This document shows positions 28,571 to 49,711 of a stretch of DNA of 64,000 nucleotides, in pieces. The stretch spans positions 186,001 through 250,000 of the forward strand of contig CDRNVI010000019.1 in NCBI GenBank assembly GCA_977017575.1. The letters run 5' to 3'. Under the pieces are notes generated by a model, which saw nothing but the letters and a program-made list of their open reading frames with translations, was not told the DNA's origin and searched no databases. Within the stretch, counting starts at the first letter, position 1. Every line of letters begins with the position of its first letter. Both the position numbers and the translations under genes were made by a program. The stretch comes from Paramoeba atlantica (Eukaryota > Protista > Discosea).

Positions 28571-30052
28571 TTAAAGCGTGATTATCGTGTATATTAAAAT
28601 CAGCAAAATAACTGCAGGAACGGATATTTGCTGGTTCCACAGACGAACGCATAGGCGACCGACTTTCTTATTCATAAGCTGTTGAAACACGTGCACCCTA
28701 AATGCATAGAATGTGTCAGAAATAGATTGGGTCCACGAACGACTGTACCTTCTGGAATTCCTGGTTGGCCGGAAACATACTGCTGGAGGGGATGGTGGCA
28801 GTCGTCTGGAAGGCACACTTTGTATTTGAATCTTTTCTAGCTCCGATTTTGCGGATCTAGTGTTCTGGCTAGCAAAATTTCTGGAAATTTTTTCCTTCAT
28901 AGAGTTCACCAGTGGCGAACGCAGTATGTCAGCACAAGACGGCCTCAATCGAGGATCAAACGAAAGAAGTGAACGCAATAACTCCACCATTTCAGCGGGG
29001 CGAGATTGTACATCCAAATCAAAACTAATGCACTGGTTCCTGTCATCCACTTGAGGAAGCTTGCCATGTGCCATAAGGTAGTGTAGTATCATACCCAATG
29101 ACCACATATCAGATGCCCGTGAAGAAGAGTAAGAATATTTTCTTAATTGTGGATCCAGTACAAATAATTCGGGTGCCATGTACTCAGCTGTACCGGTACC
29201 TCCTGTTCGAGAGCTGGATTCCGATATTTCGATGTCGCAACTAGTGCCAAAGTCACCTACCATAAGACGCGGGAGACTGTTAATATCATCCTGCGCCGCA
29301 AGTAACAAATTTTGAGGCTTCAAATCGCGATGAAGAATATTGTGACTGTGAAGGTGATGAACCCCTGAAACCGCACAGAGGAAAAAATACCAAACAAAAG
29401 AATTTGAAAGTGCAGAGCCGGAACGCTCTACGAATATATCCAAAGATCCTTCGGAGGCATATTCCATTAGAATAAAAAGACAAGGAACGACGGGCCCAAA
29501 ATCTGATACTTTGGCTTCATCTATCCAGCTGTGATTGTATTGTACAACATTGGGATGACGTGCAACGTCCTCCAATATTCGAACCTCTTTCAACACTTTC
29601 GTAAGATATTTTTCATCTTTCCCTACAGGAATCTTTTTTACTGCAAACAAACCAAGCGTGACACCTCCTACAACGTGTAAACATGCATGAACAGATGCGA
29701 AGGAACCTCTTGAAATCCTGCGGAGCTCCACGAAATTTGATGCATAGTAACCTGAACTTTTAGTACTCGGAAATATTTCTTCACCATCATCTTCACATAT
29801 ATTTTTCTGTGAAAGACGGCGAAAATAGGTCGCATGCGGGTATGAGGAGCCATTTCTTGTGGGGAGGTATGAACGCGTTTCCATTTTACTCTCCGATTCA
29901 GCTTGTGGTTGTGTAAAGGGCTGACGACACAGCGGACAGCAACGGGCACTAACGGATGGCAACCAAAGCGAAGAAGGTAAATGGTGAAGCACGGGTGATT
30001 GAAATTTTACTGTGGGGGATGGCAACAAGCTTTTTTTCATGTCGTTCTCCAT
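28571..30052 (-). CDS. IKS1: IKS1-family Ser/Thr protein kinase with a C-terminal hydrophobic anchor
   Basis: CPLCRQPF N-terminus, SGYYASNFVELRRISRGSFASV, LGLFAVKKIPVG, HPNVVQYNHSWID, PCLFILMEY, HRDLKPQNLL, DFG and GTAEYMAPE. Confidence 0.85.
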   Translation of the reverse strand: MENDMKKSLLPSPTVKFQSPVLHHLPSSLWLPSVSARCCPLCRQPFTQPQAESESKMETRSYLPTRNGSSYPHATYFRRLSQKNICEDDGEEIFPSTKSSGYYASNFVELRRISRGSFASVHACLHVVGGVTLGLFAVKKIPVGKDEKYLTKVLKEVRILEDVARHPNVVQYNHSWIDEAKVSDFGPVVPCLFILMEYASEGSLDIFVERSGSALSNSFVWYFFLCAVSGVHHLHSHNILHRDLKPQNLLLAAQDDINSLPRLMVGDFGTSCDIEISESSSRTGGTGTAEYMAPELFVLDPQLRKYSYSSSRASDMWSLGMILHYLMAHGKLPQVDDRNQCISFDLDVQSRPAEMVELLRSLLSFDPRLRPSCADILRSPLVNSMKEKISRNFASQNTRSAKSELEKIQIQSVPSRRLPPSPPAVCFRPTRNSRRYSRSWTQSISDTFYAFRVHVFQQLMNKKVGRLCVRLWNQQISVPAVILLILIYTIITL

Positions 30053-32916: not shown

Positions 32917-33572
32917 CGAGCGAACACGATAGTCTAACGAACGGCTAAAAATGTAAGCATTGGCATTGTATGCCCTCGAGTGTAAGAAATCATGAACTGA
33001 AAGGCATATTTTTTTCGTCTTACCTTACGGAACAGGTAAATAAAGTATTCTGTCTTTAAATATTTACAGTGTACTATAACAGACATACGACGAGGTGTAC
33101 CTGGGGGATCGAAAATGTGGAAAGAAAACCTACAGAGTACCCGAACGCAAACCGATATCATCGGTTTCATCTGCCGCATGCAACGGCATTTGATTTGCAA
33201 TGGCGTCCAGGATTTATCCATCGCAGATGGTGGAGACAAACCCGATCTTTACGTAGCCGGAGTGGCGTGCTACAACCGTTTGCTTCATTGGAGAAAACCA
33301 ATGGAAACCGCGTCCAGCGGTCCTCAACGGAGGCCAGCGTGACGCATGACCTCTTCGGTCAGCACCGAAAAGGGGCAGCATGCTCACACGAGGGAGAAGT
33401 TCAACTTGAATCGGCCTTCGAATTTCACGCGTATTTACTGGTGAGAAATATCAGAACTGTAAAAGCAACTTCGTCGGTGACCTGCTTATGTGGCACGTGC
33501 GAAACCCCGGGCTAGCGTCTACCGTTTAATCCTCCCCGGAAACGGAGCAAGGAGACGTACAGCATTTGTACA

Positions 33573-33980
33573 TTACTGTTTTTTTGTTGAAGGATTGGAA
33601 GTTCTTTTTGAAGTAACATACAGTGTTCTCCCATCAGAAAGAGTTGTACCAGTCAGTTTTTGTGCCTGTTCAGCGAATCCAACCGTGCTAAATTCAATAA
33701 AACCAGATCCCTTAGGTGTGCCATCCGATTGAAGCAATCTGCGAAATTTCGTAATCTCATCGGACAGAGGACCAAAACAAGATTTTATGTGCTCCGAAGC
33801 ACAATTCGATGTAAATCCAGCGAAGAATACGCTTTGATTATTTATGAATTCAAGCTTGGGTTCCACTACCATGGCCTTGTGCCCAGTGGACTGGATGTGG
33901 CGTAACGTAAGCTCTTCTTCAAGCAAGTGTATTTCTTGTTTGAGACGTTCTATTTCTTGTCGAAGCGTTGAACTGTCCAC
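33573..33980 (-). CDS. PABPN1/PABP2-like coiled-coil + RRM protein
   Basis: EIERLKQEIHLLEEE coiled coil, SVFFAGF (RNP2), PKGSGFIEF (RNP1) and GRTLYVTSKRTSNP (cf. GRQIKVIPKRTNRP). Confidence 0.65.
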   Translation of the reverse strand: MDSSTLRQEIERLKQEIHLLEEELTLRHIQSTGHKAMVVEPKLEFINNQSVFFAGFTSNCASEHIKSCFGPLSDEITKFRRLLQSDGTPKGSGFIEFSTVGFAEQAQKLTGTTLSDGRTLYVTSKRTSNPSTKKQ

Positions 33981-34809
33981 TAAATCATTTATACTCGTTG
34001 TAGACTGTAGCGAAACGTATAAGACATGAAAATTATTATGCGAATGCTCGTACTACCGTTTCTCCGATTATAATAATTAGCAGATATTTTTGCGCGGAAA
34101 TTATTCCGTTATTGTATTCTTTTCCGTTAATGGTTATTCCAATGTGTTTTACCAAGGTTTTACTTGCCATTAAAAAACACAAATATGATACTTAGAGAAA
34201 TCAAATTAGTATTCTTACAAAGTTTTTTTTGGCCATTTTTTTTACAAGTAGTAGTTTTTTAGTAAGGTTACAAGTAATTTTTTTTTACAAGGTTAGTATT
34301 TCCCTATTACGCACTATTTAGTCTGCACGCAATTTAGATTAAAAACTACTTCTTTACGTCCTGTTATGTTTTTCACATTTTTAGTCCCACCTCATGGTTC
34401 TCCGAGGCAGAAACAGATTACGGGCAGGCATGGGACACATACATTCCCAAACCCTCTCATCACTACTGACCCTCTCCCATCTTCACCACACCTCCTTTCC
34501 CCCCCACACCGCAGTAACCACTAGTCCGCTCTCCCTCCCCTGTGCACCACAGTAACCCCACTTTCTCTTTCTCCTCCACAATAACCATCAACGACTTCAT
34601 TGATGCTCTTCAATCATCATGCTTTATTGTATCCATGTCATGTCCGCAGCAATCTGGGTAGAGGTTACAAAGTGTTTCTATTTTGGCTGCGCCCAGCGAC
34701 GCATACCCCCTAGTAATTTGTCATCCGCCCTACGCCCCTAGTTATTTGTCACTGTTCTTCAAAAAATGCAAAGATTTCTGTTATAATAATTATTGACTGC
34801 CCCTATGGA

Positions 34810-35046
34810 TTAAACGCGATTAAATATTCTGATGCTCCACCTGATAAAAAATATCTTGTGTTTTTCCTTGGTTTCTTCGAAAAAATCATATTTTCGATGC
34901 CATGGTCGTCTATTTGACGACAGATGTTCTTGAGCTGGTACCCACCCGGTCGCTGAATCATAAAAGCTACCGTAATTAAGCTTTAAGGTATCTACGGAAA
35001 ATGATTCTAACTGTACCACGGCAATCCCTTGGGTTCGCATCAGCAT
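34810..35046 (-). CDS. Hypothetical small protein
   Basis: 78-aa ATG ORF directly downstream of the rhodanese gene; no motif. Confidence 0.25.
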   Translation of the reverse strand: MLMRTQGIAVVQLESFSVDTLKLNYGSFYDSATGWVPAQEHLSSNRRPWHRKYDFFEETKEKHKIFFIRWSIRIFNRV

Positions 35047-35073
35047 ACTTTTTGTCAGGGTATCATGGCGAAA

Positions 35074-35688
35074 TCATGGTGCTTGCGTGGAAACTAACGT
35101 TGGATACATCTGATAAAACATTTGAAAGCCACCTGAAAGCACTGATACGCTCGCAGTATCTTTTTCTGGAATGTTGATTTCCCTCATTACATCTACACAA
35201 AGGGCAGCTGCTGCGGGACCACGCTGTTGACTGAACATACAGTGAAAAACAAGGGTACATTTGGAAATATTGGCCTCGTCGCGTAGAGTTTGCTTCTCAA
35301 AAAGACGTCTACGATCAGAAAACAATGTGTGGAGGAATTCCTGCATTTTTAAGCGGCATAATGATTTTGAAGGCAGATGCAAACTCTGCGGTATGTATCC
35401 CTCTTCCCGGTCCTCATCGCGCACATCTACAACAATTACTTCTTTCCGAAAAAGAGCCCCGCCCTTTATCACAGTGGCAAGCTCAGCGCTAGTTATTTTT
35501 CGTACGGACATGTTCATAAGAAATATTGGGTTTTGTAAACAACAATTTTGTTGTACTACTTCTGGCATATTACATGCAGTATGAATATACAGTACTACAG
35601 TACGAATTTCAAAACGCAACCTACCATATCCCGTGACGGAAACGTTCTGAGAAAATAGAGAACTGAAGAAGCGAAAAAGCGGAAACAA
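35074..35688 (-). CDS. Rhodanese/Cdc25-like phosphatase (ACR2-type arsenate reductase)
   Basis: VIVVDVRDED..EGYIPQSLHLPS, LVFHCMFSQQRGP (HCX5R) and VLSGGF. The listed start is TTG; the real ATG is probably MPEVV or MNMSV. Confidence 0.85.
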   Translation of the reverse strand: MFPLFRFFSSLFSQNVSVTGYGRLRFEIRTVVLYIHTACNMPEVVQQNCCLQNPIFLMNMSVRKITSAELATVIKGGALFRKEVIVVDVRDEDREEGYIPQSLHLPSKSLCRLKMQEFLHTLFSDRRRLFEKQTLRDEANISKCTLVFHCMFSQQRGPAAAALCVDVMREINIPEKDTASVSVLSGGFQMFYQMYPTLVSTQAP

Positions 35689-35803
35689 ATATTATTCTCT
35701 TATTAAGCTTTTCTCCACTATTGTTCACCCTGGTTTGTTTGAAACAAATATTATTCTCTTATTAAGCTTTTCTCCACTATTGTTCACCCTGGTTTGTTTG
35801 AAA
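35682..35803. repeat. Perfect 59-bp tandem duplication
   Basis: gaaacaaatattattctcttattaagcttttctccactattgttcaccctggtttgttt at 35682 and at 35741. Confidence 0.95.
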
Positions 35804-36309
35804 AGTAGATTTTCAAAATCGACATGAATTTTTCTTAATTTATTTATCTTATTTTTCGAATAATGTAGTTCATGACACAAGCACATACATTAGGAAAATA
35901 GATATTTCAGGTTACATTATCATTTCAGGTTCACTCAAACCCCTTTTCAAACATCTCCCTCTGTTACCCGCTTCACTGGTCTGGACTGGTGACCCGCAAA
36001 CGTGACGTTGAGGGGGCTTTCATTAAAACGGTATCGATGCTTCAAACTTCGACCCCATCTCTCTTGTATTTAATGGCTATGCACGGCGATTTTCGGCAAA
36101 GGGCACAACCCGTCGAAATACTTATCCTTATAAAATTAATTAAGAAAAGACGCAGTACAGTGTAGTCTACTCGCAATTAATTTCTGATGTCTGTGCTTTT
36201 GCAGTAGGCAAAGACAGTTGTATTGGCCTTCCAAACATGAAAATGTTTTGCCCCAAAATTGTCAGCCATACTATCGTCGGCTATACCAACCATTGTGTAT
36301 GAGTAATAC

Positions 36310-36693
36310 TCAAAAAGGATATGGTGGCAACGGACGTTGTCTCAGAATTCCACTTATTCGTTGTTGACACCATATTTTATGTTCTTCCTCTTTCTTCAAA
36401 TAATCTTGCCTGAACAGCTTTGCTTCACGAAGAGAAAGCGTTCTAACAGCTCGATTGTAAGCTTTTATACCTTCAAGATCGGGCGATATATATTCTCTAA
36501 TGAAAGTTGCCATTTGCAGGCCGATTCTATGCAAAGATTGGATGTCCTGCCGCGGTGTATCCTTGTGGTATTTGTATAATTCTAGCTTGATTTTATGTCG
36601 AGCCCAGAATAATTGTGCACGATCCTGAGGATAAGCATCACGAATAGCTTGACACAACTTACGGTAAAGATGCTGTGAAGAATTCCAAGACAT
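36310..36693 (-). CDS. LYR-motif-like small mitochondrial protein
   Basis: HLYRKLCQAIRDAYP..RAQLFWARHKIKLELYKY resembles the Complex1_LYR pattern. Confidence 0.5.
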   Translation of the reverse strand: MSWNSSQHLYRKLCQAIRDAYPQDRAQLFWARHKIKLELYKYHKDTPRQDIQSLHRIGLQMATFIREYISPDLEGIKAYNRAVRTLSLREAKLFRQDYLKKEEEHKIWCQQRISGILRQRPLPPYPF

Positions 36694-36981
36694 GGAATGC
36701 CAAACTGAGTAGAAGGAAAGCGAGAAATTAAAACGTAAATAAAGTTATAAAGTTCATCGCGGACACACCGAATTGTTGGAAACTACTGTACATTACATCG
36801 CACTACAAGTCGTGAGCGATACAATCGAGTCCGTTTTCCTGTTTGTGTTAGAAACCAAGGATTCGAACTCTATTCGGCCTCAAATCATCGATTGACACGA
36901 TATGCGCTTAAATGTGAGTTTGATGCCCTTGAAGAGCGCAGGGATCACGATACATTAGAAATTTGAGCTATAAGATTTTGT

Positions 36982-37368
36982 CTACTTGGAGACTATTGTA
37001 TTGTTCGGGCTCTCTGGAGCCAAACATCCATAGTTCTCTGTTACAGACAGTCCTGTTGTACTAGATAAAGTAATAAGACGATCACTGATGTGCAAAAGTT
37101 GGAGATTTCGCGATCTTCCTTTATTTTCCTTGTCACTATTCATAATGGCTGTTGCTGTTGTCCTATTAGACCGGGAACATCGACTCTCAATATTATTCTC
37201 ACAATTTGGTAATGTAACAAAGTCTTTTCCTAATCTACTGCCCAACACAGCACAAGCATGCAAGAAACTTTCCTCTTCGTGATATATGCGACGCTCAATT
37301 TCAATTAATTGACATCCCACACGTTCTCTCGGGGCGTGCTCCAAAAATTCCATGATACTAAATCGCAC
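36982..37368 (-). CDS. Hypothetical protein
   Basis: 128-aa ORF on the coding strand; no motif. Confidence 0.35.
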   Translation of the reverse strand: MRFSIMEFLEHAPRERVGCQLIEIERRIYHEEESFLHACAVLGSRLGKDFVTLPNCENNIESRCSRSNRTTATAIMNSDKENKGRSRNLQLLHISDRLITLSSTTGLSVTENYGCLAPESPNNTIVSK

Positions 37369-38017
37369 TATACATGTATGTATGTAGTAAGCATGAACCG
37401 GATAAAGTCATTACTGTTCAAAAAGGAAGAACTTAACGAGACGCACAAAACTTGTACTGGCACTGAAAGCCTATTACAGTGTATGTAACGTACATGTTTC
37501 TTATCATGTCCCACGCGAACTAGTGCCTCAGCTTTCTTAAGGAACCTCTGACTTCCGCGTTACATCCAAGCCAAAATTTTATCGCTAAAACTGGTACATT
37601 TTTTTTTGTTTTTTAATTAAAAGTTGTCAATTTTTGGCAAGAACCATTTTTCTATTTTATTTTTGTCAATTTCACATGAAGTCTGATGTTGGCAACCACC
37701 TTTTAGAGAAGAGTGCCATGGATTTCGCACAAACTCAAATTTCATCAATTTTTTGACCATCCTTGACAATCATCGAGTGAGATTTCGGTTTCGACTACTG
37801 TGTATTCTAAGGTAACCGGGTGACACTCAGTGCGATTATAGAAGTATAAAGAGAACCCGCGGTAAACCTCGTAGCTACGAACAGGCAAGCTGGACGACAC
37901 AAAACGTCGTAAGGCTCTGTTGCCTTTTTAGATGATGAATCAATGGGACCTATAAGGATAATTTTATGTGAACTACTTAGCGAAAATCTTGACAAAATCG
38001 ATATCGTAGAAGACGCA

Positions 38018-38301
38018 TCGTAGACCCCCCCAGTAACAAGGATTTGACCCTTTTTCGGCGGTCCCCCAGTAACAAGGCTCGGGAGGGTGGTTGGAGGGAG
38101 GTGTTTGGGCGGGTGGGGGTTGCTGGGCGGGTGAGAGTAGTTGCGCGGGAGCGAATGGCGTAGTTGCGGGGGTGGCTGGACAAAAAAGCAACGCATTCAT
38201 GAACAAAAAGGGTCTTTTCCCACCCAAAAGGCATACCCCCCAATAACAAGGATTTGGTCATTTCGGCCCAAAATCGATTCTATTACTGGGGGGGTCTACG
38301 G
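38018..38301. mobile_element. MITE family A, copy 2 (284 bp)
   Basis: CA|TCGTAGACCCCCCCAGTAA ... TTACTGGGGGGGTCTACGG|TA (18/19 TIR match, left TSD decayed to CA); the right ~75 bp is homologous to copy 1. Confidence 0.88.
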
Positions 38302-38441
38302 TATTAGAAATTGGTAGCATACTGAAAGGGGAAAGGGGACTATGTGGTGTGCGACGAGCAGCACTCATCGCATCTACCGAACAAGTTTCATTTCTCCCAT
38401 AAAAACAAAATTTGGACTGATATTTCCAATGCGAAGGTATC

Positions 38442-41258
38442 TTACGACATGAAGACATCCACGTCTGACTTGGCAGTTGGCTCTGTGCCCCGAAGAAAAG
38501 CGTGTTCTAAAAGTTGCTCTACTGTCGCCCTCTTTTCTGAATCTCTTTCAAAGCACTTTAAAAGAAAATCTGCAAGCAAAGGGTCTAATTCTGTTGGTAA
38601 GTTTGGTGGTAAGCCGGATGTTTCAGTAATTTGCTGCATTGCTTGATACAGTGTTGCTGCCTGTCTCCATGGTGGTCGACCTCCATTGAGCATTTCCACA
38701 ATTGTACACCCGAAGGACCATACGTCTGAATTGTACGTCCACTTGACTCCATGAAATGCCTCGGGCGCCATCCAAAGAGGGGTTCCCGTAATCGTCGCAG
38801 TTTCGGAACCAGTGACCAATTTTTTGGCCGTTCCAAAATCAGCAACTTTCAGAACGCCTGTTTTGGAAATCAGTACATTGTCTCCTTTGAGATCACGATG
38901 TACAATCTGATGATTATGAAGGTGCTTTAACGCACTCAATATCTGGGTAGCGTAGCTTTGTAACGTTACTTTACTGAGGCCCCCACTTGGAAGTTTTCGG
39001 CACATTTGGCTAAGGCTTCCTCCTTCAGCGTACTCCATCGCAATGGTAATGTCACGTGTGTTGCGATTCAGCTGACAACCGTAATACTTGATCAAATTCC
39101 TATGTTCGGGAAGTTCCCTCATTAGGTTAACTTCTCTCACAATACTCTGTGCTTCCTTGAGAGAAAGTCGGTCACGATGCTTCCCTTTTAGAGGAATGAC
39201 TTTCAATGCGACAACGGTTCCTGTATCTTCTCTAAACGCTTTGAATACTTTACCGTGAGCCCCACGTCCGATGAGATGCCCGCGGGTAAACTTCAATGTT
39301 GGGCTACTATCTGCGGATTTCGCGGCGATATCCATAAAAATATAATCCGTTGCTGAACGGGAAGTATTGTCAGAGAATGGTGAAGGACTTGGTGCTGATG
39401 ACGGACTTCCTTGTGGTGACTCTGTGTCAAGATCTGACGAAAACGAGAATGATTCCTGTTGAGTTGGTGTTGAAGGACTTGAGAGTGCTCCGTTGTTCAC
39501 AGTATATGCGCTTTCTTCCTCCGGCGCTGGTAGCAGAGATTGCAATGCTGGAGGTTTTTCGGATCTTACGGAACCCATTGAAGAAATAATGTCTTCTGAA
39601 GATGTAGTGAATGCCTCACACTGGCTTGATTTTTTCTTACGATAAAGCAATATACTCATTAATGCAGCGTTCAGAAGAAAACAGACGCTTATCCATACAA
39701 GAAAAATACGTTTGTAATGATGCCTGTGAAGGAAAGGGGCCAATTGTCTTGCCGTCGGAGGTAATTCTATGCTAAAAATAAGGACCGATTCCGAAGGCTG
39801 TAGTTCCGTACTGCTATGAGCAAATAATTTGTTGCGACCCTTTTTGCTTACAGTCACCGTTGGCTGCTCAAAGACATCTGAAGATTCCTTTGAAACGCAG
39901 TGTTTACCCCCCACAACAGCAATAGTATATTCATTCAGTCGGGCATTCGGTAGATTTCCAGAGTATACCGCGTGCATGGAAGAGCCCGCAAGCTGAAAAT
40001 TATTACTCTCCAGTGATCCAAGTAAAAGATTCAAGTTCACAACTCGCCAACCACAGCTACGACAACTGAGGTCCAAAACCTCTGCAAAAGGAACTATATT
40101 GCCGTCTTCGCCGAACCCACCAAAAACAAACAAGTAATTTTTGCCCTTTGTTCCGTCACCAACTACTATAACAGAATGGTGACTCCTTGCGTAATGAAGC
40201 GGAGCGTATGGCTTCCATCCTAATTGCTCCTTAAAAAACCAAACTTTGTTCGTAACTGCACCGTTTGATATGAGTTGACCCCCAATCACAAACAAGATCC
40301 GTAAGGCATACAATGCGATTCGATGTCCACGTAAGCTCTCTGGCAAAAGAGCAACGACCTTTTTCTGATAAAATATTGGCCAATGAACAGTATCGTACTC
40401 AACAATTTCCCTGGAACAGTTCACACTATCCAATACTTCCCCTGAGAAACCTTGTCTTGGTGATAACACTGCAGGTTCAATAATTTTGCTATGCTTGCGA
40501 ATCCGTGAAGAATCTTTACTTGTACTTATATCCTGCTGCCTTGAGTGTCCGACAGAATGTTGAGCATTTATTTCTTTGCGTACATTATGTATCCTCACGC
40601 CGCCTCCGACCCAGATATAATCCCCAAGTTGAACAATCGTACTTTCACTCACTGGTGGAACGTTCGTTCCCCACGGCTCTCCATGCTCAGGAGGGGCATA
40701 CCAATGAGGTTCTAACCACTGCTCAGTGGCCAAATCGAACACATCCGTATGTTCTGGAATATGGCCTCGTGGACCCACGCCACCTAACAATATGGCTACG
40801 TGATTGTGTATAACTGCACCAGAAGCATTCACTCTAGGAGTATGATACAACCCGGTATGATCCCCTGGGAGAGAAAACCACTTACGTTTCTCCATATCAT
40901 ATTTGAAATTTCTGGTGGCCCAAGTGCCATTCGAATACGTACCCCCGAAAACATAAAGACCAGATGCATACAGAAGAGTTACTGAGCCCAATCGTGGACC
41001 GTCAGGAAGAGTTTCGGTATGCGGCTTTCCGACAAGTGCGATTGAGATGTTCAATTCGGTTAAAGAACACGAAATATTTTTTCTGACCATAGAGTCCGCT
41101 GAGTAAACTCTATGCATATTTTCTTGGCGGAAAAACGGATCCAAGTAGGTACGACCCAAAGTCAAACCCAATAAGACGCTCCCCACGAGAGGCAGTAATA
41201 TTGTTTGAAGACAATACTGACGTTCTGACAGAGTGCTGCATACTCTATTAACCGACAT
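38442..41258 (-). CDS. Receptor-like kinase 1: N-terminal hydrophobic signal + kelch repeats + TM + STE11/MAP3K domain
   Basis: ILLPLVGSVLLGLTLG; kelch GG motifs (LYVFGG, AILLGG, IWVGGG, LFVIGG, YLFVFGG, IAVVGG); TM IFLVWISVCFLLNAALMSILLY followed by RKKK; IGRGAHGKV, VALK, HRDLKGDNVL, DFG and GTPLWMAPE. Confidence 0.9.
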   Translation of the reverse strand: MSVNRVCSTLSERQYCLQTILLPLVGSVLLGLTLGRTYLDPFFRQENMHRVYSADSMVRKNISCSLTELNISIALVGKPHTETLPDGPRLGSVTLLYASGLYVFGGTYSNGTWATRNFKYDMEKRKWFSLPGDHTGLYHTPRVNASGAVIHNHVAILLGGVGPRGHIPEHTDVFDLATEQWLEPHWYAPPEHGEPWGTNVPPVSESTIVQLGDYIWVGGGVRIHNVRKEINAQHSVGHSRQQDISTSKDSSRIRKHSKIIEPAVLSPRQGFSGEVLDSVNCSREIVEYDTVHWPIFYQKKVVALLPESLRGHRIALYALRILFVIGGQLISNGAVTNKVWFFKEQLGWKPYAPLHYARSHHSVIVVGDGTKGKNYLFVFGGFGEDGNIVPFAEVLDLSCRSCGWRVVNLNLLLGSLESNNFQLAGSSMHAVYSGNLPNARLNEYTIAVVGGKHCVSKESSDVFEQPTVTVSKKGRNKLFAHSSTELQPSESVLIFSIELPPTARQLAPFLHRHHYKRIFLVWISVCFLLNAALMSILLYRKKKSSQCEAFTTSSEDIISSMGSVRSEKPPALQSLLPAPEEESAYTVNNGALSSPSTPTQQESFSFSSDLDTESPQGSPSSAPSPSPFSDNTSRSATDYIFMDIAAKSADSSPTLKFTRGHLIGRGAHGKVFKAFREDTGTVVALKVIPLKGKHRDRLSLKEAQSIVREVNLMRELPEHRNLIKYYGCQLNRNTRDITIAMEYAEGGSLSQMCRKLPSGGLSKVTLQSYATQILSALKHLHNHQIVHRDLKGDNVLISKTGVLKVADFGTAKKLVTGSETATITGTPLWMAPEAFHGVKWTYNSDVWSFGCTIVEMLNGGRPPWRQAATLYQAMQQITETSGLPPNLPTELDPLLADFLLKCFERDSEKRATVEQLLEHAFLRGTEPTAKSDVDVFMS

Positions 41259-41600
41259 TTATGTACATAGAGACTAAAATTGAAGAGATTTCTTTAATCG
41301 TGGACAGCAAAAGTCACGAATAAAAGCTTGTCGCAAAGGGCTTTTTACATGCAGGGGGTGCACGAAAATATTGAGGATAAAATTCGTAAATGTTGGCCAA
41401 TTTTGGAAGGTAGCATCGCATTCGAGAGCTCTCATAGAGTTACATGTGATATTATTACCTATCGCGCATTCTTGGGATTGTTTCCTAATTTTTTCCAATT
41501 GTTGAACCTGAATTCTGGTTGCCACAAAGTGCCATACACCCCTGTTCCACTTTTTTGCCCGCAATTGATTGAGCACACCAGATGAGCTTTTCGAATTTTC

Positions 41601-41709
41601 TTTTTTAGGCTCTTCGTTATACGCGGTGGTCGCTTTCAACTTAGAAGTCACTCATGCTGCGCGCTTCGCGTTGAAAACTACCACCGCGTATGACGAAGAG
41701 CCTAAAAAA
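41601..41709. repeat. 40-bp-arm inverted repeat (37/40) with a 29-nt spacer
   Basis: 41601-41640 versus 41670-41709 (GTTGAAA.C.ACCACCGCGTAT.ACGAAGAGCCTAAAAAA); spacer + right arm recur, diverged, at 42421-42500. Confidence 0.9.
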
Positions 41710-43135
41710 AAAATTGGCTTCGAAAGCAGGAGAAACCGGAAGGATTGGAGCCAAAATTAGCCAATTTTAGGGTAGAAATAGGGTTATTTTTGCGTACTTT
41801 TGTTCTCAGAGCACTAAATTCGACTTTTTTTAAATCACTCGTACGCATGAATGTAAGGCTACAGAACGTAATCGGTATAGAATTCGAGTCCAACGACACC
41901 ATTCTTCCGGGACAAAAACCGGGACAAAAATACCCCTTCGGGACCGAAAAATACTTTTTGGCATTTTTTAGTCAAATTTGGGCCATTTTGGTAGGCGCAC
42001 CACGGCTCATAGAAGGGGTATCTCGTGAAACCAACTGCGGAGAAAGCTAGTATATGCCGAACTCTCAAAATACAATAGGGGAAACAGTTTTAAAAAAGTA
42101 TTTTTTTTGCCATTTTTTTCGCCAAGTTGAATTTTTTTTGCAAAAGAATTTGGGTAACCGGCACTATAAATGTAGGTTAAAATCCATTTTTTTCTGATGA
42201 TTTTTTTCCGCTCGAAAAAACTTTTACATGACTTTTTAAAACGTTTCCACTCATACTCATGTCGTTCCAACTTATATTTCAATGCTTGGAATACTCAATG
42301 GACCGCCCAGGATATACTACATTGGCCTACTACATTGGTCTACTTGGTACTGGTGACCTGTAAAAAGGATAAGGTGCGCTCCCAGACGCTCCCAGACACT
42401 CCCATCCAGTTTGAACCCTCTTAGAAGCCACCACGGCTACCCCCTTCGCGTTGAGAACTGCTTCCGCGTTTAACGCAGAGACTAAAAAGGAAAAAATTGC
42501 GAAACGATCCAGAATAATCCAACTTTTGGTACAAATACTCGATTCTCCCCATATTTCGTATTCTCCCCATATTTCGGACGTTTTTTGGGGTCTTACCATT
42601 AGAGGTAGGGGGCACATCTGATCGAAAAAACGTGTGGTCTGGTAAGTAAGCTAAAAAAATAAATAAGAAAAGAGATCAACGAAAGATCAAAAACTTTTTC
42701 CTGAGTCCTTTTGGGCATGATTGTTCAAACAAATTTTACTTGTTTTCAACCTACATTTATAGTGCCGGTGAACCAAAAATTTTTCCGAAAAAATCCGAAC
42801 TTGTCGGACCCGTCCTGCGCATACGTGGGGGGGTCACCCCCGGGTAGGGGGGTGGAAAATACGTACCAAGACCCTGGCTACCCGTTCTGCGCTTTTGTTT
42901 CGAAAAATAATTTTTTCAAAAAAAAATTCGTGCGGTATGCCCCCCATGGACCCCCCAAGGGTCCGATTTTTTTTTTGAAATTTTTTGGACCACCGGAGCC
43001 CCTTTTATATATTTTTCTTCTATTATATTACTGTGTTCCTCTTATATTTTCACTGTTTTTGTTCACTTTTTTTTCAATAATCGAGGGTAAAGCGGTAGTT
43101 ATACAACCACCGCAATTTTTTCAGCAAAGTACGTA

Positions 43136-43492
43136 CTGTCCCCCCCGTACGTAAGAGTCCGCCGATTTTAGGCAATTGGACTCCTAAGTGGAGGGGTCAC
43201 AATTTTTCGGACTCTTAAGTGGGAGGGGGCCGCATTTTTTCCTAAAATTTCAATATGGCCGGTTCCGTTTTTTTTTCCTCTATTTTTTCTATTTTTGTAC
43301 CATCAAGTACAAATCGCTTGGAAATATTAAAAACGCAATGGGCAGACAAAAAACAAAATCAAAGAAAATAGAAAAAAATCAAAGAAAAAAAAATCTGGCG
43401 GCGCTTCGCGCCGCAGGCAGCCCGAGGTTCCGTCAAAAAGGACTCTTAAGTAGGGGGAGTACCCCGCGGACTCTTAAGTAGGGGGGGGGCAG
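43136..43492. mobile_element. MITE family B (357 bp, TA TSD)
   Basis: TA|CTGTCCCCCCCGTACGTAAGAGTCCG ... CGGACTCTTAAGTAGGGGGGGGGCAG|TA (23/26 TIR match); further GGACTC[TC]TAAGT copies at ~43178, ~43209 and ~43440. Confidence 0.88.
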
Positions 43493-43690
43493 TAAAAGAT
43501 TCGCGAGATCGTGTAAAAAATGAGTTTTTCACCCCTTGTTTCAGCTGTGGTAGCTAAGCAAAAAAGGTTCGTTTTTTCCACGTTTTTCAGTAACAAATTG
43601 TGTTTTTTTGTGTTTTTTTAGGTTATTTTACCAGAATTTATGTATACTTCTATCTACCATTTCTCTTTTGAAATGTCCTGATTACTGTTA

Positions 43691-43754
43691 CCCCCCCTTA
43701 CTTAGCCCCCACTTTTTGGCCCAAAACCCATACTTTGTGGTGAAGTAAGGGGGG
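43691..43754. repeat. Hairpin unit C1 (CCCCCCTTACTT ... TGTGGTGAAGTAAGGGGGG)
   Basis: 12-bp arm match; the right 19-mer is identical to that of unit C2. Confidence 0.8.
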
Positions 43755-44632
43755 TGAATAAGCGACTCAAGGTTCGATCAATTTATAGTTCTCTCGGAAA
43801 TCCTCAAATTATTGAAGTACACTATGCTATCGACATTGAGCATAATTCCCTTTTCTCGAGTGTTGTAATACGTCGCGTTGCACATTCTACATTTTTTATA
43901 TTTTATGTTTCTTTTAGATTGTCTACGATGTCCCATGCGTTTTTAACATTCCCCCCATGAAAATTTCTTACATCGTAAAATTTTGAATGATGTCGCAGAA
44001 CATAACGCATTGAACCAATTTAAATTTTAGAACTACAAGACGCTGTGGCGCAACTTTATGATCAAAGCGATGATGAAACTGACTTGGAAGAAAACCATTC
44101 TGAATTAGAAATGGTTCAACGAATCTAAAACATTTCGGATTTGACAGTATTAAATAAATATATATACTGTATGTCATTATACGATCGGATTGCTCCGATC
44201 GGTCACTGGCAAGCCAGACTCTTCACAGCTAGATTTGGAAGATTCGAGGCCGACGTCCTCTACCTGTTTTCGTTAGTACAAGACGGCATCAACGTGCTGC
44301 TACTAACCCGTTGTGTCGACGAATCGTACGGTGAACCCATGATAATCTTCAAAAGTCATCATTCCTGCAGCTACGTAGCCTTCCTGTAGCCGTTAACGTT
44401 CCCCCCGGAACGTTAAACCGGACTGTGGTTTAAAATCCCGGTATGACGGCGTCGTCACCAAGAAAGTTGCACCACAAACCTTTGTGCATCGATCTTTGTG
44501 TGCCATCTGTGTCCCCCCTTGAAGACCACTGGGCGTGGCTCTGCCTCGCCTTACAACGATGCAACGGTCGGTTGCAGTGCACCCCTCCGGCTGTGTAAAG
44601 AGGTGGTAAGTTGCCTGGAGAAAAATCTGACA

Positions 44633-44685
44633 CCCCCCTTACTTCACCACACGTCCAGTGACTAACTGTGGTGAAGTAAGGGGGG
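44633..44685. repeat. Hairpin unit C2: perfect 19-bp inverted repeat with a 15-nt loop
   Basis: CCCCCCTTACTTCACCACA-cgtccagtgactaac-TGTGGTGAAGTAAGGGGGG. Confidence 0.95.
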
Positions 44686-44818
44686 AGGCGAAGTAAGTAA
44701 GGTTCAAATTTACTTCAGTCTAACCGTTCACGCATACCCAACGCTTGGCAGTGTCCTCGTGACACCCAAACGCCTTGGCGTCTGCAGGAAAAGAATCCGT
44801 TTCCTTAATCATAGTCTA

Positions 44819-44882
44819 ACTAGTATTTTAGTACGTACTAAAATACTAGTAATCGACTAGTACGTAATATAGTACGTACTAT
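44819..44882. repeat. Perfect 32-bp palindrome plus a related 14-bp palindrome
   Basis: ACTAGTATTTTAGTAC|GTACTAAAATACTAGT (44819-44850) and ATAGTAC|GTACTAT (44869-44882). Confidence 0.95.
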
Positions 44883-45457
44883 GAGATACTACTTTTTTGG
44901 AATGGAAGGATTTTTTTTCTCAGGTATTGCGGCACTCCTATTTGACAAAACAAATCGTTACTTTTGATCGAAACAGACGAGACAACCTATTTTGCATGGG
45001 CATAGTACAGTATAGAGGACTTTTGCGAGTATTTTCACGGTCGACGCTCGGAGCTCTGCTTTTAGAGAGGGATGGGGATAACTTAAAGAGGAAAAACTGC
45101 TGCTTGAGAACTGCTGATGAGGTATTATAACTGCTGATGATGAGGAACCATCGGAAAAATAATTAAGTTAATTATTTTTTACCAAAAGTATCCTACGAGA
45201 GGATCTCAGTTGCCCATGAGGTGCATAAATTAATCTAATTCGTTTCTGCACCTTTCGTTGTCAGAAAAAGCCCTCTTCTGGGGCATAGTGCTGAAGTAAT
45301 GTCGAGCTAAATTCAGTCACTAAATTCACAAAAATAATCAGTTTTTTCTAAAACCCACAAATGTTTGCGTGTTAAAAAATCAAGTTCTTTTTCGAATTTT
45401 TGATACTTCCCTCAAAAGGGGCTGTGGGTACTGTTTTTTCCCAAAAAATATTTTTCT

Positions 45458-46580
45458 TGTCATTTCCAGTGCACCACTTTTCTTAAAAACTGTATTCTCA
45501 TATCCAATGCACCATCAATTATTTAAAGAAGTATTATTTTATAATATCCTTCGGATCTACACTACAAATCCGCCATTATTCAAGACTTAGTCTTTACGAT
45601 CGTAATCGTATTCATGCACTCTTCGCATCTGGCGAGAGTCGGCGAAGCATAGCTCGCATAATTGGCAAAAGTCACAGCACTGTTTGTCGCGAGTTGGCGC
45701 GTAATGCAAGAAGGGGTCAGTGCTATGAGGGGATGAGGGCACATACGCCTCTTGTGTAAAAGGGTAAAGCCTCACAAGATACAAGGCCTTTTGCAAGAGG
45801 AAGTCAGCTCTCGACTTCAAAAGAAGCACAGCCCGAAACAGATTGCAAATACGATCCGGAGCTGTCGTACCGCCTCGACTTCTACCATATATCGCCACAT
45901 TCGTCGCAACGCGTCCTTGGGCGGCAAGTTGTACACCCATTTGCGGATCCGGCGAAAGAGGCCATACCGTCGTCGCGCTAGACCTGATCGCAGCGCGATT
46001 CCCAACCGAACGCCACTTGAAAATCGACCAGAAGTAGTCAATAAGCGTCGGCGCTACGGCGATTGGGAAGCAGACTTCGTCGACGGCCGAGGACATACCG
46101 GATATATTCTTACCCTGTGCGAGCGTAAGAGTCGCATCCTTGTTCTTCTCAAGTTGGAATCTAAGAACGCGAAGGAGGTAAGCAAACAAATTGTAGACGG
46201 GTTAAAGAACACAGGGTTCGGACGATCACATACGACAACGGAACAGAATTCTGACACCATGAAGAAGTAAACAAAGAATTAAAATGCAAGTCTTTCTTTT
46301 GCGCTCCGTACTATTCGTGGGAGAAAGGGTCTGTGGAACATGCAAACGATTTGATCCGTCAATTCCATCAGAAAACCGAATTTTTTGAGTATTTGAACCA
46401 AAGTGAATTAAACAAAACAGCATTAGAATTGAGCACTCGTCCTCGGAAATTATTAAAATATCGTTCTCCAATGGATTTTGTGAATGAACTCCTCTACATA
46501 TGTGCATAAGGCCATAGTTCGTAAATCTTTCATGGACTAGTGGTCCAGTTTTTAAAAAAGTGTAGCACTTCTACAGATCA
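45458..46580 (+). mobile_element. IS30-family insertion sequence remnant
   Basis: Imperfect IR cores at 45468-45492 (AGTGCACCACTTTTCTTAAAAACTG) and 46546-46569 (CAGTTTTTAAAAAAGTGTAGCACT) bracket an IS30 transposase. The outer TG...CA ends at 45458/46580 are tentative and no TSD was found. Confidence 0.8.
45568..46509 (+). pseudogene. IS30 transposase pseudogene
   Basis: Frame 1 HTH: HYSRLSLYDRNRIHALFASGESRRSIARIIGKSHSTVCRELARN. Shift of +1 (45737-45756) gives ...HSPKQIA...STIYRHI...RPEVVNKRRRYGDWEADFV. Shift back (~46205-46216) gives RTITYDNGTEF*H...FCAPYYSWEKGSVEHAN..IRQF...RPRKLLKYRSP. DD33E spacing; in-frame TGA at 46252; the start codon reads ATC. Confidence 0.92.
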
Positions 46581-49500
46581 TACACTGTGCAATCTAAGGT
46601 TGCGCTGTACTCCTGTACATCGCTTAGACTAGAGGAGGTAGGAGTGTGCACAATATGATTGCTGCTGTGTGTTATACTGTCTTGACTGTTTGTGTGAATT
46701 TTCGAAGCACTTCCACTGCCTCGCTCAAACTTTTTGTGACGTGTATGCTCTACAATTGAAGGTAGATTTGTTGACCTCTGTGGACTCCCAGATTCGGGGC
46801 GTATTTGAGTTACTGTCAAATCTTGAAAAATGTTATATTTTTCAAGATGAGATGATTCTATCCTTTCTGACTTCGTTATGAAGGGATCCATTAAGAGATC
46901 ATCGACGTCTGGGCGTCGCTCCGGATCACGTTCGAAACATTTCAAGAGGAAGTTATTCAAAATTGGGGGTAGTGATTTCGAACTAATCGTGGGCGGCAAT
47001 CCAGTGCTCTGCGTTACCATTGTAATAAAGTTTGAGAGCGAGTCCGTCGAAGGCCATGGTGCCTCGCCGCTGTTCAACATTTCTACCACTGTGCATCCAA
47101 CAGACCATACATCGACTTTCGCACTAAGATAATCGTTCTTGTTAACGTCTTTTACATAATCTTGTTGCGTAGATTTTGTTGTGAAGTCATTAGTCGGAGT
47201 CAATCCCGCGTTCTCAACGACAGCTTTAAATTCGGTCTGGTGAGAATATTCCACCATAGATGGATTTTTAGCCTTCAACTCGGAACAAGGCAATAGGTCT
47301 TTACCCTTCCACTGCACAAGGAGCTCGGGAGCAGTCCAAGGCAACGTACCGAAAGCATGCTTTGCAAAAGGATTCGTTGTGTGCTTTTCGTTATATGAAC
47401 ATAGCTGATTGTCCACGGTATGTGTTGCGAAAATCCTGGCATGGCCAAAATCGGCTAGTTTCAGGGTTCCTCTCGAGCTTAATAGTATATTATCCGCCTT
47501 GACATCGCAGTGTGACACCTGGTGCGCATGAAGGTGGGAAAGTCCCATCAACAGTTGCGTGGTAAATTTCTGTATGACACTAATGTCTAACTGTTGACGT
47601 CGGCATAGAGCGCCAAGTGTACCGCCTTCTGCGAATTCCATAACAATGTGTATCTCTGCTTTTTCGGGAAATATATTACAACCGTAGTATTGTACAATGT
47701 TTGGATGAGGTGGAAGCGATTTCATTAATTTTGTTTCTCTAGCAATTATTGCGATGTCTTCTTGCTGCATTGAATCGTATATAGGCAAGACTTTCACCGC
47801 CAAAAGCCCTCCACCGCGTTGGACTGCGGCATAAACAATCCCATATGACCCTTGTCCAATTTCAGATGTCAATTTATACTGTAAAGTTGCTCGGTCAGAC
47901 GTTGGGGTAAGAGGTGAATTTAGATCACCCACGTGTTTTTCAAGCTGTTCTGTGAGCGATGCACTCGTATGACATGCAAACGTATCGCTATCGGCTTCGG
48001 GCCACGAGGGGCCGAAATTTGGCTCCAAATCATGCCCCTCAAAGTTTAAATGAAGTAATGGACGACGTACCTCCTCTTTTTTAACCTTTTCGGGTCCATT
48101 CTTTGTCATATAATGTATACGCAGACTTCTATAGATTTCCAGGAAAACAAGACATAGCAATATGCAAATTATGAGACTTGTCCAAAAACGTGCACTTTCG
48201 ACCAATGCGATCAAACGAAAGCTTTTCGATAGCCCTTGTGAGCTTATGTGCGTGATATTCGCCCGAAAAATAAGCAACTCTGATATGTACTCCGCCGGGC
48301 GGTATCCTCCACTGTATGCAAAATCAAATCTGCTATAGTTCCCAAAGTCTGTGACGAATGGTACCGTAACTGACGACCATGCTGCCATAAACAATCTTTG
48401 GAGTCGATTCCTTGTCTCATACACAGGAAATAACTTCGCATTGTGCCTGTTTTTTCGCAAGCAGACAAGATCTATAAATCTCTGAGCTGACATTCTCTGC
48501 CATTGAGAAGTTGGTACGCGTAGGTCAAATGTCTCGATTCCTTCCGCTAGTTTGGGCCGCTCTATTTTCGCATCTTGAATGCCTCCTGCGACGAGAAGAA
48601 ATTCAATTATTGTTCTCGGAGTTCCTAGTTTTACTGCTGTGAAGTAAGCTCGTGGTGAATGCATTGAATGCAAAGATACCCAATGCAGCAATGATTTATC
48701 GGCTGACAGAGTAGACGTACTTGTTTGCAATGTCCTCCTCTGAACCTGAGCTCCGCGACCCACTCCCCCAATCGACAACAACGAGCAATTTGATCCACGA
48801 AGTAGTTGATGACCCGTAATTGGCAGTATGCTTCTTCTTCCGGCTGTTGTCCCGAAAACTCTTTCTTCAGAAAATGTGTCCAAATTAAACGAAAAGTACT
48901 TTTCGTCCACTATATTTCGATTATGATCTCCTCCTATTATGTACAACACCGACGAATTTCCTTTCTCGCTGCATTCCGGTGGAAGGATCACAGTCCCAGG
49001 AAAGCTTGGTGCCTTGAATGTACTGCCTCCTAGACTTCGCATTTTCCAGGAAACCGCAGCTAACCAGCGTAAACTTGGAATATGAAATACATCCACCACA
49101 TGAACAGCAGGCTCTGAACCATCTCTAGGATCGTACGAATGTCCACCTATTATAATAATAATATCGTCTTCGTATTTCTTTCCCAAGCTTCTAACAACGT
49201 TATTTCGAGAAGAATTGGTTGAATCTACTTTACGCTTGAGTTCGGCTCTGCCATACACTCGGGGGGTGTAATATTGGCTTTCTTTCCTTAGAACTGTCCA
49301 TTTCTTTGACGTTGTATTATATTGCAACGATCGTGAGGAAGGTGCCTTGCTGCCTTGAGATCCTTCTCTTCCACCGAAAATAAACACGGAATCTCTATAA
49401 TAAACGCTGGAATGTCCGTACCGTGGTCTAGGTAACGTAGTATATTCGAGAACTCCAATATCCAGTACAGAGCGTTCGGTAAAAAAAGTATTAGCGCACG

Positions 49501-49711
49501 TTTTATTATTCAATATTTGATTCAGATGGATGCAACGTTTGTTGTCATACGCTATGTGATTTTCTTCAGTATTTAAGAAATTTTTGGTCGTGATATTCGT
49601 TGGCATGGTCTCGTTCGAAAACAGAAGCGTGCGTAATCCTTGATTGAAGGGGTGAAAAAAGGAACAATATAGCAAGACAATTACGGCGCGAAAATGCACG
49701 AAGAATGTCAT
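46571..49711 (-). CDS. Receptor-like kinase 2: signal peptide + kelch repeats + TM + non-RD STE11/MAP3K-like domain
   Basis: MTFFVHFRAVIVLLYCSFF; PRPRYGHSSVYYRDSVFIFGG, IIIIGG, LYIIGG, LLSIGG, PRAYFTAV..LLVAGG; TM FWTSLIICILLCLVFLEIY; IGQGSYGIV, LAVK, HCDVKADNIL, DFG and GTLPWTAPE. Confidence 0.9.
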   Translation of the reverse strand: MTFFVHFRAVIVLLYCSFFHPFNQGLRTLLFSNETMPTNITTKNFLNTEENHIAYDNKRCIHLNQILNNKTCANTFFTERSVLDIGVLEYTTLPRPRYGHSSVYYRDSVFIFGGREGSQGSKAPSSRSLQYNTTSKKWTVLRKESQYYTPRVYGRAELKRKVDSTNSSRNNVVRSLGKKYEDDIIIIIGGHSYDPRDGSEPAVHVVDVFHIPSLRWLAAVSWKMRSLGGSTFKAPSFPGTVILPPECSEKGNSSVLYIIGGDHNRNIVDEKYFSFNLDTFSEERVFGTTAGRRSILPITGHQLLRGSNCSLLSIGGVGRGAQVQRRTLQTSTSTLSADKSLLHWVSLHSMHSPRAYFTAVKLGTPRTIIEFLLVAGGIQDAKIERPKLAEGIETFDLRVPTSQWQRMSAQRFIDLVCLRKNRHNAKLFPVYETRNRLQRLFMAAWSSVTVPFVTDFGNYSRFDFAYSGGYRPAEYISELLIFRANITHISSQGLSKSFRLIALVESARFWTSLIICILLCLVFLEIYRSLRIHYMTKNGPEKVKKEEVRRPLLHLNFEGHDLEPNFGPSWPEADSDTFACHTSASLTEQLEKHVGDLNSPLTPTSDRATLQYKLTSEIGQGSYGIVYAAVQRGGGLLAVKVLPIYDSMQQEDIAIIARETKLMKSLPPHPNIVQYYGCNIFPEKAEIHIVMEFAEGGTLGALCRRQQLDISVIQKFTTQLLMGLSHLHAHQVSHCDVKADNILLSSRGTLKLADFGHARIFATHTVDNQLCSYNEKHTTNPFAKHAFGTLPWTAPELLVQWKGKDLLPCSELKAKNPSMVEYSHQTEFKAVVENAGLTPTNDFTTKSTQQDYVKDVNKNDYLSAKVDVWSVGCTVVEMLNSGEAPWPSTDSLSNFITMVTQSTGLPPTISSKSLPPILNNFLLKCFERDPERRPDVDDLLMDPFITKSERIESSHLEKYNIFQDLTVTQIRPESGSPQRSTNLPSIVEHTRHKKFERGSGSASKIHTNSQDSITHSSNHIVHTPTSSSLSDVQEYSATLDCTVYDL

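Follow-up and report, generated by a model that had tools for sequence, protein, structure and literature searches.

Receptor kinases are regarded as scarce in kinetoplastids, and how these organisms perceive their environment is an open question. It arises for a stretch of 64,000 nucleotides (the window; positions 186,001 to 250,000 of contig CDRNVI010000019.1 in assembly GCA_977017575.1), which carries two large open reading frames (ORFs), K1 (38442-41258) and K2 (46571-49711; all positions are those of the window). The lineage that hosts K1 and K2 is an early-branching kinetoplastid, and each ORF joins a hydrophobic N terminus, a kelch-repeat region, a transmembrane (TM) segment, and a protein kinase domain in one polypeptide. 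Are these receptor-like kinases and, if so, at which membrane would they work? From sequence comparison, we consider it reasonably probable that K1 and K2, members of a prokinetoplastid family, are Ser/Thr kinases that span the membrane once in a type I-like manner, with an exoplasmic kelch domain and a ligand-triggered signal that would run from K1 to a mitogen-activated protein kinase kinase (MAP2K). Early-branching kinetoplastids would in that case retain single-pass proteins that couple a propeller-type binding domain directly to a kinase resembling a MAP2K kinase (MAP3K).

Two intact genes of one layout

The window has a GC content of about 43%, and its minus-strand genes form one long run that looks like a kinetoplastid polycistronic unit. 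The genome comprises 45.7 Mb in 248 contigs, and every match is doubled (contigs C19 and C43); K1 and K2 are intact on both haplotigs, and the K1 copy on haplotig C43 is identical. Both ATGs are directly preceded by an in-frame stop, so neither ORF can be extended in the 5′ direction. With open frames as long as 938 and 1046 codons at 43% GC, chance ORFs are far-fetched, and a pseudogene or chance ORF was ruled out by the intactness of both genes on both haplotigs and by their conservation in other species. The two ORFs of common layout reported in a preliminary description of this DNA were both found intact at exactly the positions given there, on the minus strand. K1 is present in the public protein collection (P0001). 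The public gene call for K2, P0243 (770 aa), begins only at an internal Met, so that the leader and blades 1-3 are missing from it; this gene model, the truncation of which hides the receptor-like architecture, is corrected here. The two genes lie 5312 bp apart and share 29% identity overall, 35-44% in the kinase domain and about 25% in the ectodomain (pairwise E = 4e-5), in agreement with the strong divergence and the 5.3 kb spacing described before.

The shared layout, a hydrophobic N terminus, kelch repeats, one TM segment followed by basic residues, and a STE11-like kinase, was borne out by Pfam, hydropathy, and matches in the PDB. Features of both proteins and their closest relatives are collected in Table 1. 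Each protein contains two strongly hydrophobic segments, one N-terminal and one central, which were called as leader and TM segment by hydropathy alone. In both, a disordered linker rich in Ser and Pro connects the TM segment with the kinase domain.

Kelch repeats were recognized in both ectodomains above the gathering cut-offs of Pfam (given in brackets). K1 scored 63.5 bits for PF24681 (50), 54.1 for PF24981 (50), and 40.7 for Kelch_4 (21.6); K2 scored 30.9 for Kelch_3 (22), 30.4 for Kelch_6 (25.3), 30.3 for Kelch_4 (21.6), and 22.2 for Kelch_1 (20.1). The blade signature of a hydrophobic run followed by GG occurs with kelch spacing and six times, the usual blade number of a kelch propeller, in each protein, at residues 105, 159, 218, 326, 380, and 450 of K1 and at 113, 189, 260, 315, 376, and 468 of K2. 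A blade profile derived from the family likewise found six blade-length repeats each in K1, K2, and the homologue P0098 of Apiculatamorpha, a count that is partly circular because the profile was seeded on the GG motif. Blade 3 of K1 is weak by this profile (-3.4 bits), and about 85 inserted residues separate it from the next blade. In the family alignment, the GG and Trp blade columns are invariant. Sequence matches of the ectodomains in the PDB were weak and all kelch, among them the LZTR1 kelch for the K2 ectodomain (E = 1e-7). The ectodomain look-alikes in the ESM Atlas were single kelch propellers with scores <0.9, which serve as leads only.

Table 1. Features of K1 and K2 and related proteins (window positions)
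Feature	Position	Strand	Remarks
K1	38442..41258	-	Complete ORF, 938 aa; kelch, TM, STE11-like kinase
K1 N-terminal hydrophobic segment, aa 16-34	41157..41213	-	Kyte-Doolittle 19-mer mean 1.98; preceded by R5 and R13
K1 kelch-repeat region, aa 85-485	39804..41006	-	Six blades; Pfam PF24681, PF24981, and Kelch_4 above cut-off
K1 TM helix, aa 518-540	39639..39707	-	Hydropathy 2.37; followed by KKK stop-transfer cluster
K1 juxtamembrane linker, aa 541-657	39288..39638	-	Ser/Pro/Thr-rich, low complexity; poorly conserved in family alignment
K1 kinase domain, aa 658-922	38493..39287	-	Pkinase E = 8.8e-63; all catalytic motifs intact
K2	46571..49711	-	Complete ORF, 1046 aa; divergent paralogue, architecture as in K1
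K2 N-terminal hydrophobic leader, aa 1-19	49655..49711	-	Hydropathy 1.81; R8 in n-region; signal-peptide-like
K2 kelch-repeat region, aa 94-504	48200..49432	-	Six blade-profile matches; Kelch_3, Kelch_6, Kelch_4, and Kelch_1 above cut-off for blade 1
K2 TM helix, aa 507-529	48125..48193	-	Hydropathy 2.35; followed by basic residues RSLRIH...K
K2 kinase domain, aa 612-945	46877..47878	-	Pkinase E = 1.5e-49, in two stretches; non-RD
P0102			Perkinsela sp. CCAP 1560/4 KNH00558.1, annotated "protein kinase"; Pfam kelch and Pkinase
P0094/P0239			From two ENA assemblies, Perkinsela-type; Pfam kelch and Pkinase
P0098			Apiculatamorpha spiralis transcript EP00759_P041767; Pfam kelch and Pkinase

Kinase class and family relationships

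The catalytic core of eukaryotic protein kinases is complete in both proteins. K1 carries GRGAHG at residue 664, VALK at 683, HRDLKGDN at 787, DFG at 807, and APE at 831, together with the STE-type motif GTPxWMAPE; the corresponding motifs of K2 are GQGSYG at 619, LAVK at 637, HCDVKADN at 734, DFG at 754, and APE at 794. K2 is a non-RD kinase because HCD replaces HRD; its activation segment is also longer by about 16 residues, and a further insert, of about 59 residues, separates APE from subdomain IX. When compared with all PDB chains, K1 matched MAP3K2 best (167.9 bits), followed by MAP3K5 (147.9) and MST/PAK kinases (about 146), and K2 gave the same order, with MAP3K2 best, then MAP3K5/ASK1, then STE20 kinases. 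Membership of both kinases in the STE group is secure from these sequence matches, and within it a STE11-like or MAP3K-like class, as previously proposed, is favoured. Human MAP3K2 (MEKK2) and MAP3K5 (ASK1) thus have the closest solved kinase domains and the same catalytic machinery; they differ from K1 and K2 in being soluble, with PB1, thioredoxin-binding, or other cytosolic regulatory domains and without a membrane span or ectodomain.

To find relatives, a HMMER search with K1 as query was run against 1.84 billion representatives, the best 150 hits were examined, and clusters colinear in both halves were picked by local phmmer of both ectodomains against these hits. Three clusters matched in the kelch half as well as in the kinase half, and all three are from Prokinetoplastina (P0102, P0094/P0239, and P0098). 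Over the kinase domain, identity reaches 51% with P0094 and 44-45% with the remaining members. In the family alignment, the kinase signatures are shared alongside the invariant blade columns and the conserved TM segment. The Perkinsela protein KNH00558.1 and the Apiculatamorpha protein P0098 are true family members, colinear over kelch, TM, and kinase; they differ in having generic annotation only, and no K2-type paralogue was seen in them. P0098 also matches the NanM family PF24996. No further paralogue of the K1 or K2 ectodomain was found in this genome. Of the top 150 hits, none that belonged to or bordered on the family came from a trypanosomatid, and a positive control was present among the same hits, namely the Phytomonas orthologue of this genome's MORN-STE kinase. 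Since this orthologue was recovered, conserved trypanosomatid STE11 orthologues were detectable in the search. Word-index protein searches with full-length K1, the K1 ectodomain, and a family profile returned generic kinases and kelch proteins only; these blanks carry no weight because even K2 and known family members were missed. As far as seen, then, the sequences define a small family of predicted kelch, single-TM, STE11-like kinases that is restricted to prokinetoplastids.

A careful kinase-domain tree of 28 sequences, with which a quick tree of 71 sequences agrees, placed K1, K2, and their homologues in one clade (support 95/91). Within it, the Perkinsela-type proteins form the sister group of K1 (97/96), which is nearer to them than to K2. 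Forcing K1 and K2 to be sisters costs 9.7 log-likelihood units (p-AU 0.017 in the approximately unbiased (AU) test, which was framed after the tree was seen and with K2 on a long branch). A recent tandem duplication giving rise to K2 from K1 was thereby rejected (p = 0.017), and K2 is an old paralogue because the sister relationship fails. The description of the two genes as diverged paralogues holds accordingly, in that they belong to one family clade without pairing within it.

The family as a whole is nested within a larger euglenozoan group of STE11-like kinases with membrane anchors and differing outer domains. Outside the family, the sister clade (98/95) consists of metagenomic kinases, one of which has a periplasmic-binding-protein-type domain and a TM segment. 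The next clade (99/96) holds diplonemid kinases from Namystynia, Artemidia, Lacrimia, Diplonema, and Rhynchopus, mostly with a TM segment just upstream of the kinase or with an N-terminal anchor, and in two of them a ricin-B lectin domain precedes the TM segment. Because kinases of neighbouring clades carry other outer domains, then a TM segment, then the kinase, the sequences suggest ectodomain shuffling on one euglenozoan STE11-like scaffold, which, if so, parallels the plant receptor-like kinases (RLKs). On a broader and rather doubtful proposal, K1 and K2 would be the kelch branch of an old euglenozoan receptor-MAP3K radiation of single-pass proteins with interchangeable outer domains, passing an extracellular ligand signal to a mitogen-activated protein kinase (MAPK) cascade in one step, a system that diplonemids and prokinetoplastids would have retained and that trypanosomatids would, for the most part, have lost or rebuilt. 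The order of a periplasmic-binding-type or ricin-B lectin domain, a TM segment, and a kinase was seen in P0128, P0201, and P0229, which come from metagenomes and Namystynia karyoxenos. The closest kinase paralogue in this genome outside the family is the MORN-repeat STE kinase (L003:1501-3726, contig C29), with the clear Phytomonas orthologue P0160; MORN-STE is a conserved kinetoplastid type in a published list (Parsons et al. 2005, PMC1266030).

Other kinases resemble K1 and K2 in design. Receptor-like Ser/Thr kinases such as the plant RLKs also combine a variable exoplasmic binding domain, one TM segment, and a cytosolic kinase, and the ESM Atlas contains clusters with kelch and Pkinase domains in ciliates and sponges. 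Both the RLKs and the sponge and ciliate clusters belong to other kinase groups (IRAK/Pelle-type, TK/TKL), so that the likeness lies in the domain combination only and presumably arose independently. Nearer by lineage are the trypanosomatid TM kinases of STE11-like type, among them MEKK1 (Tb927.2.2720), RDK1 (Tb927.11.14070), and Tb927.10.1910, which likewise have a C-terminal STE11-type kinase, a membrane anchor, and a sensor-like N terminus, with roles in differentiation and quorum-sensing pathways. They differ in having mostly at least two TM segments and cyclase-like, PAS, or bacterial-sensor-like domains, without kelch, and none of them grouped with K1 or K2 among the best hits.

Topology, compartment, and competing readings

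Every family member has an N-terminal hydrophobic leader and a single central TM segment, the position of which is conserved. The leader of K1 could be a signal peptide or an uncleaved signal anchor; whether this 19-residue segment is cleaved or retained, an exoplasmic kelch domain would follow. In P0094, P0239, and P0098, Lys and Arg residues number 5-7 after the TM segment versus 1 before it, and because this positive-inside bias is clear, the kinase is predicted to be cytosolic in these three proteins. Furthermore, N-x-S/T sequons pooled over the family were enriched before the TM segment (22 observed versus 14.3 expected from shuffles) and depleted after it (5 versus 12.9), and K2 alone has nine before and 0 after. 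By these sequence features, the kelch domain is probably non-cytosolic and the kinase cytosolic.

If K1 and K2 are indeed type I-like receptors, the leader would carry the kelch domain across the membrane of the endoplasmic reticulum (ER) into the lumen or to the cell exterior, while the kinase would stay cytosolic. The kelch repeats would fold as one six-bladed propeller binding a glycan or protein ligand, and binding would alter the oligomeric state and lead to trans-autophosphorylation of K1, an RD kinase. Activated K1 would then phosphorylate a MAP2K. K2, which is non-RD and carries long inserts, would probably be constitutive or act as a modulating partner of K1. Should the proteins reach the cell surface, this would constitute a one-step input into the MAPK cascade in this lineage.

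Several observations weigh against this scheme. As to the propeller, the blade profile found only four clear blades in the Perkinsela-type homologues, and AlphaFold2, run on a six-sequence alignment, returned an all-beta, low-confidence model of the K1 ectodomain (mean predicted local distance difference test score (pLDDT) 41.7; predicted template modelling score (pTM) 0.40). For full-length P0098, modelled in the same way, the ectodomain was again all-beta and had a pLDDT of 20-68 versus 80-95 for the kinase; as the ectodomains were of low confidence in both runs, a closed propeller is unsupported by the models. With respect to topology, the TM-flank charges of K1 (+3/+3) and K2 (+2/+3) are nearly balanced. 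Eukaryotic kelch domains are mostly cytosolic. Finally, STE11 matches lead STE20 matches by about 20 bits in the case of K1 and by no more than 4-12 bits in that of K2.

It is nearly an even chance that K1 and K2 are not surface receptors but reside in the ER or endomembrane system, with a kelch domain that would monitor glycans, folding, or cargo from the lumen, as IRE1 and PERK do. The kinomes of the TriTryp species contain one kelch-bearing kinase, of the "unique" group (Parsons et al. 2005, PMC1266030). In Trypanosoma brucei, Tb927.5.3150 consists of a signal peptide, kelch, TM, and a C-terminal kinase, has 178 kDa with TM domains at 442-464 and 607-629, and is conserved in Trypanosoma cruzi with kelch (TcCLB.503955.100) and in Leishmania major without it (Jensen et al. 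2021, PMC8519429). This protein, the only kelch-TM kinase of kinetoplastids that has been localised, was found in bloodstream forms in the ER, where it co-localised with BiP, with some posterior Golgi or endocytic signal, and five of the seven tagged TM kinases of T. brucei were in the ER (PMC8519429). It is classed as "Orphan" and showed no fitness loss on RNA interference (Jones et al. 2014), and its Leishmania orthologue LmxM.08.0530, classed as "Other/unique" and localised as "Endomembrane", is among the genes for which no deletion was obtained (Baker et al. 2021). A lumenal role in glycan monitoring also accords with the sugar-binding enzymes among kelch propellers and with the NanM match of P0098. 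The T. brucei data, however, come from ectopic, C-terminally tagged proteins under a strong promoter, Tb927.5.3150 is at best a putative orthologue of K1 and K2 and has a kinase of another class, no ER-retention motif was seen, although none was searched for, and the sequon enrichment is compatible with either compartment. Because of the trypanosomatid precedents, we rate the ER or endomembrane system and the cell surface or flagellar pocket as about equally likely locations for K1 and K2. An environment- or host-sensing receptor, as the preliminary description had suggested, is consequently one option only, since Tb927.5.3150 is in the ER and its Leishmania orthologue is endomembrane; the part of that suggestion which stands is the placement of the kelch domain outside the cytosol by the topology evidence.

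Could K1 and K2 simply be highly diverged orthologues of Tb927.5.3150 and TcCLB.503955.100, hence members of an already described family? The domain order of signal peptide, kelch, TM, and C-terminal kinase is identical, both groups are kinetoplastid, and rapid evolution could have produced the trypanosomatid kinase domain as a derivative. Nevertheless, we regard this as improbable. By its published description, with which the comparison was made, Tb927.5.3150 is set apart by a kinase of the Unique/Orphan class rather than STE, by a size of about 178 kDa with two predicted TM segments, as opposed to 105-117 kDa, one TM segment, and a STE11-like kinase in K1 and K2, and by two annotated kelch motifs. 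That the family and its immediate surroundings contained no trypanosomatid protein in the 150 best hits, with the Phytomonas control present, also speaks against orthology. The preliminary description had not recognised the architecture as characterised, and this needs to be narrowed: the order of kelch, TM, and kinase is published for Tb927.5.3150 and the combination of kelch and kinase occurs in ciliates and sponges, whereas we found no paper on the prokinetoplastid kelch-STE11 family, nor on a diplonemid radiation of receptor-like STE11 kinases. What is new is the prokinetoplastid family of kelch, TM, and STE11-like kinase; what is already known is the kelch-membrane-kinase design in T. brucei.

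Least likely, and quite improbable in our estimate, is a cytosolic kelch domain that recruits cytosolic partners to a membrane-bound MAP3K, with N-terminal stretches that are no targeting signals and a central segment serving as a tether or hairpin: the usual role of eukaryotic kelch domains as cytosolic protein-interaction modules and the balanced flank charges of K1 and K2 would fit it, but the leader in all family members, the positive-inside bias toward the kinase side in three homologues, the sequon distribution, and the sister kinases, where the kelch domain has its counterpart in modules typical of the extracellular side (ricin-B lectin, periplasmic-binding type), argue against it.

Spacers, repeats, and neighbouring genes

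The two largest gene-free gaps of the window, 32917-38441 (5525 bp) and 41259-46570 (5312 bp), lie directly 3′ of K1 and K2, respectively; the median gap is about 400 bp. About half of the K1-K2 spacer (41259-46570) consists of copies of dispersed mobile elements, at about 42138-42783, 43683-44697, and 45434-46490. The spacer holds an element of about 640 bp with terminal inverted repeats (>15 copies, 91-98% identity), one of about 1 kb (83-85% identity), and an IS30-transposase-like element of about 1.07 kb (at least 10 copies, 93-94%), which by its copy number is a multi-copy element of the genome rather than a solitary relic. About 345 bp of this spacer are missing from haplotig C43. The 3′ gap of K1, which consists largely of unique sequence, could be a long 3′ untranslated region (UTR) or a regulatory region. 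That both gaps, each of about 5 kb, represent a duplicated spacer or, alternatively, long unique UTRs was rejected, given that the K1-K2 spacer is half mobile-element sequence and the stretch 3′ of K1 is mostly unique.

A gene for V-ATPase subunit B is the upstream neighbour of K2, and a DUF501 gene follows K1 on its downstream side. Farther along the same gene run, 8 kb downstream, another protein kinase gene occupies 28571-30052 (493 aa, Pkinase E = 2e-41), in the product of which Pfam gave no kelch match. About 135 bp past the K1 stop codon, positions 38021-38306 are taken up by a dispersed repeat of about 285 bp that resembles a short interspersed nuclear element (SINE) or a miniature inverted-repeat transposable element (MITE) and occurs in more than 40 copies genome-wide with 80-88% identity.

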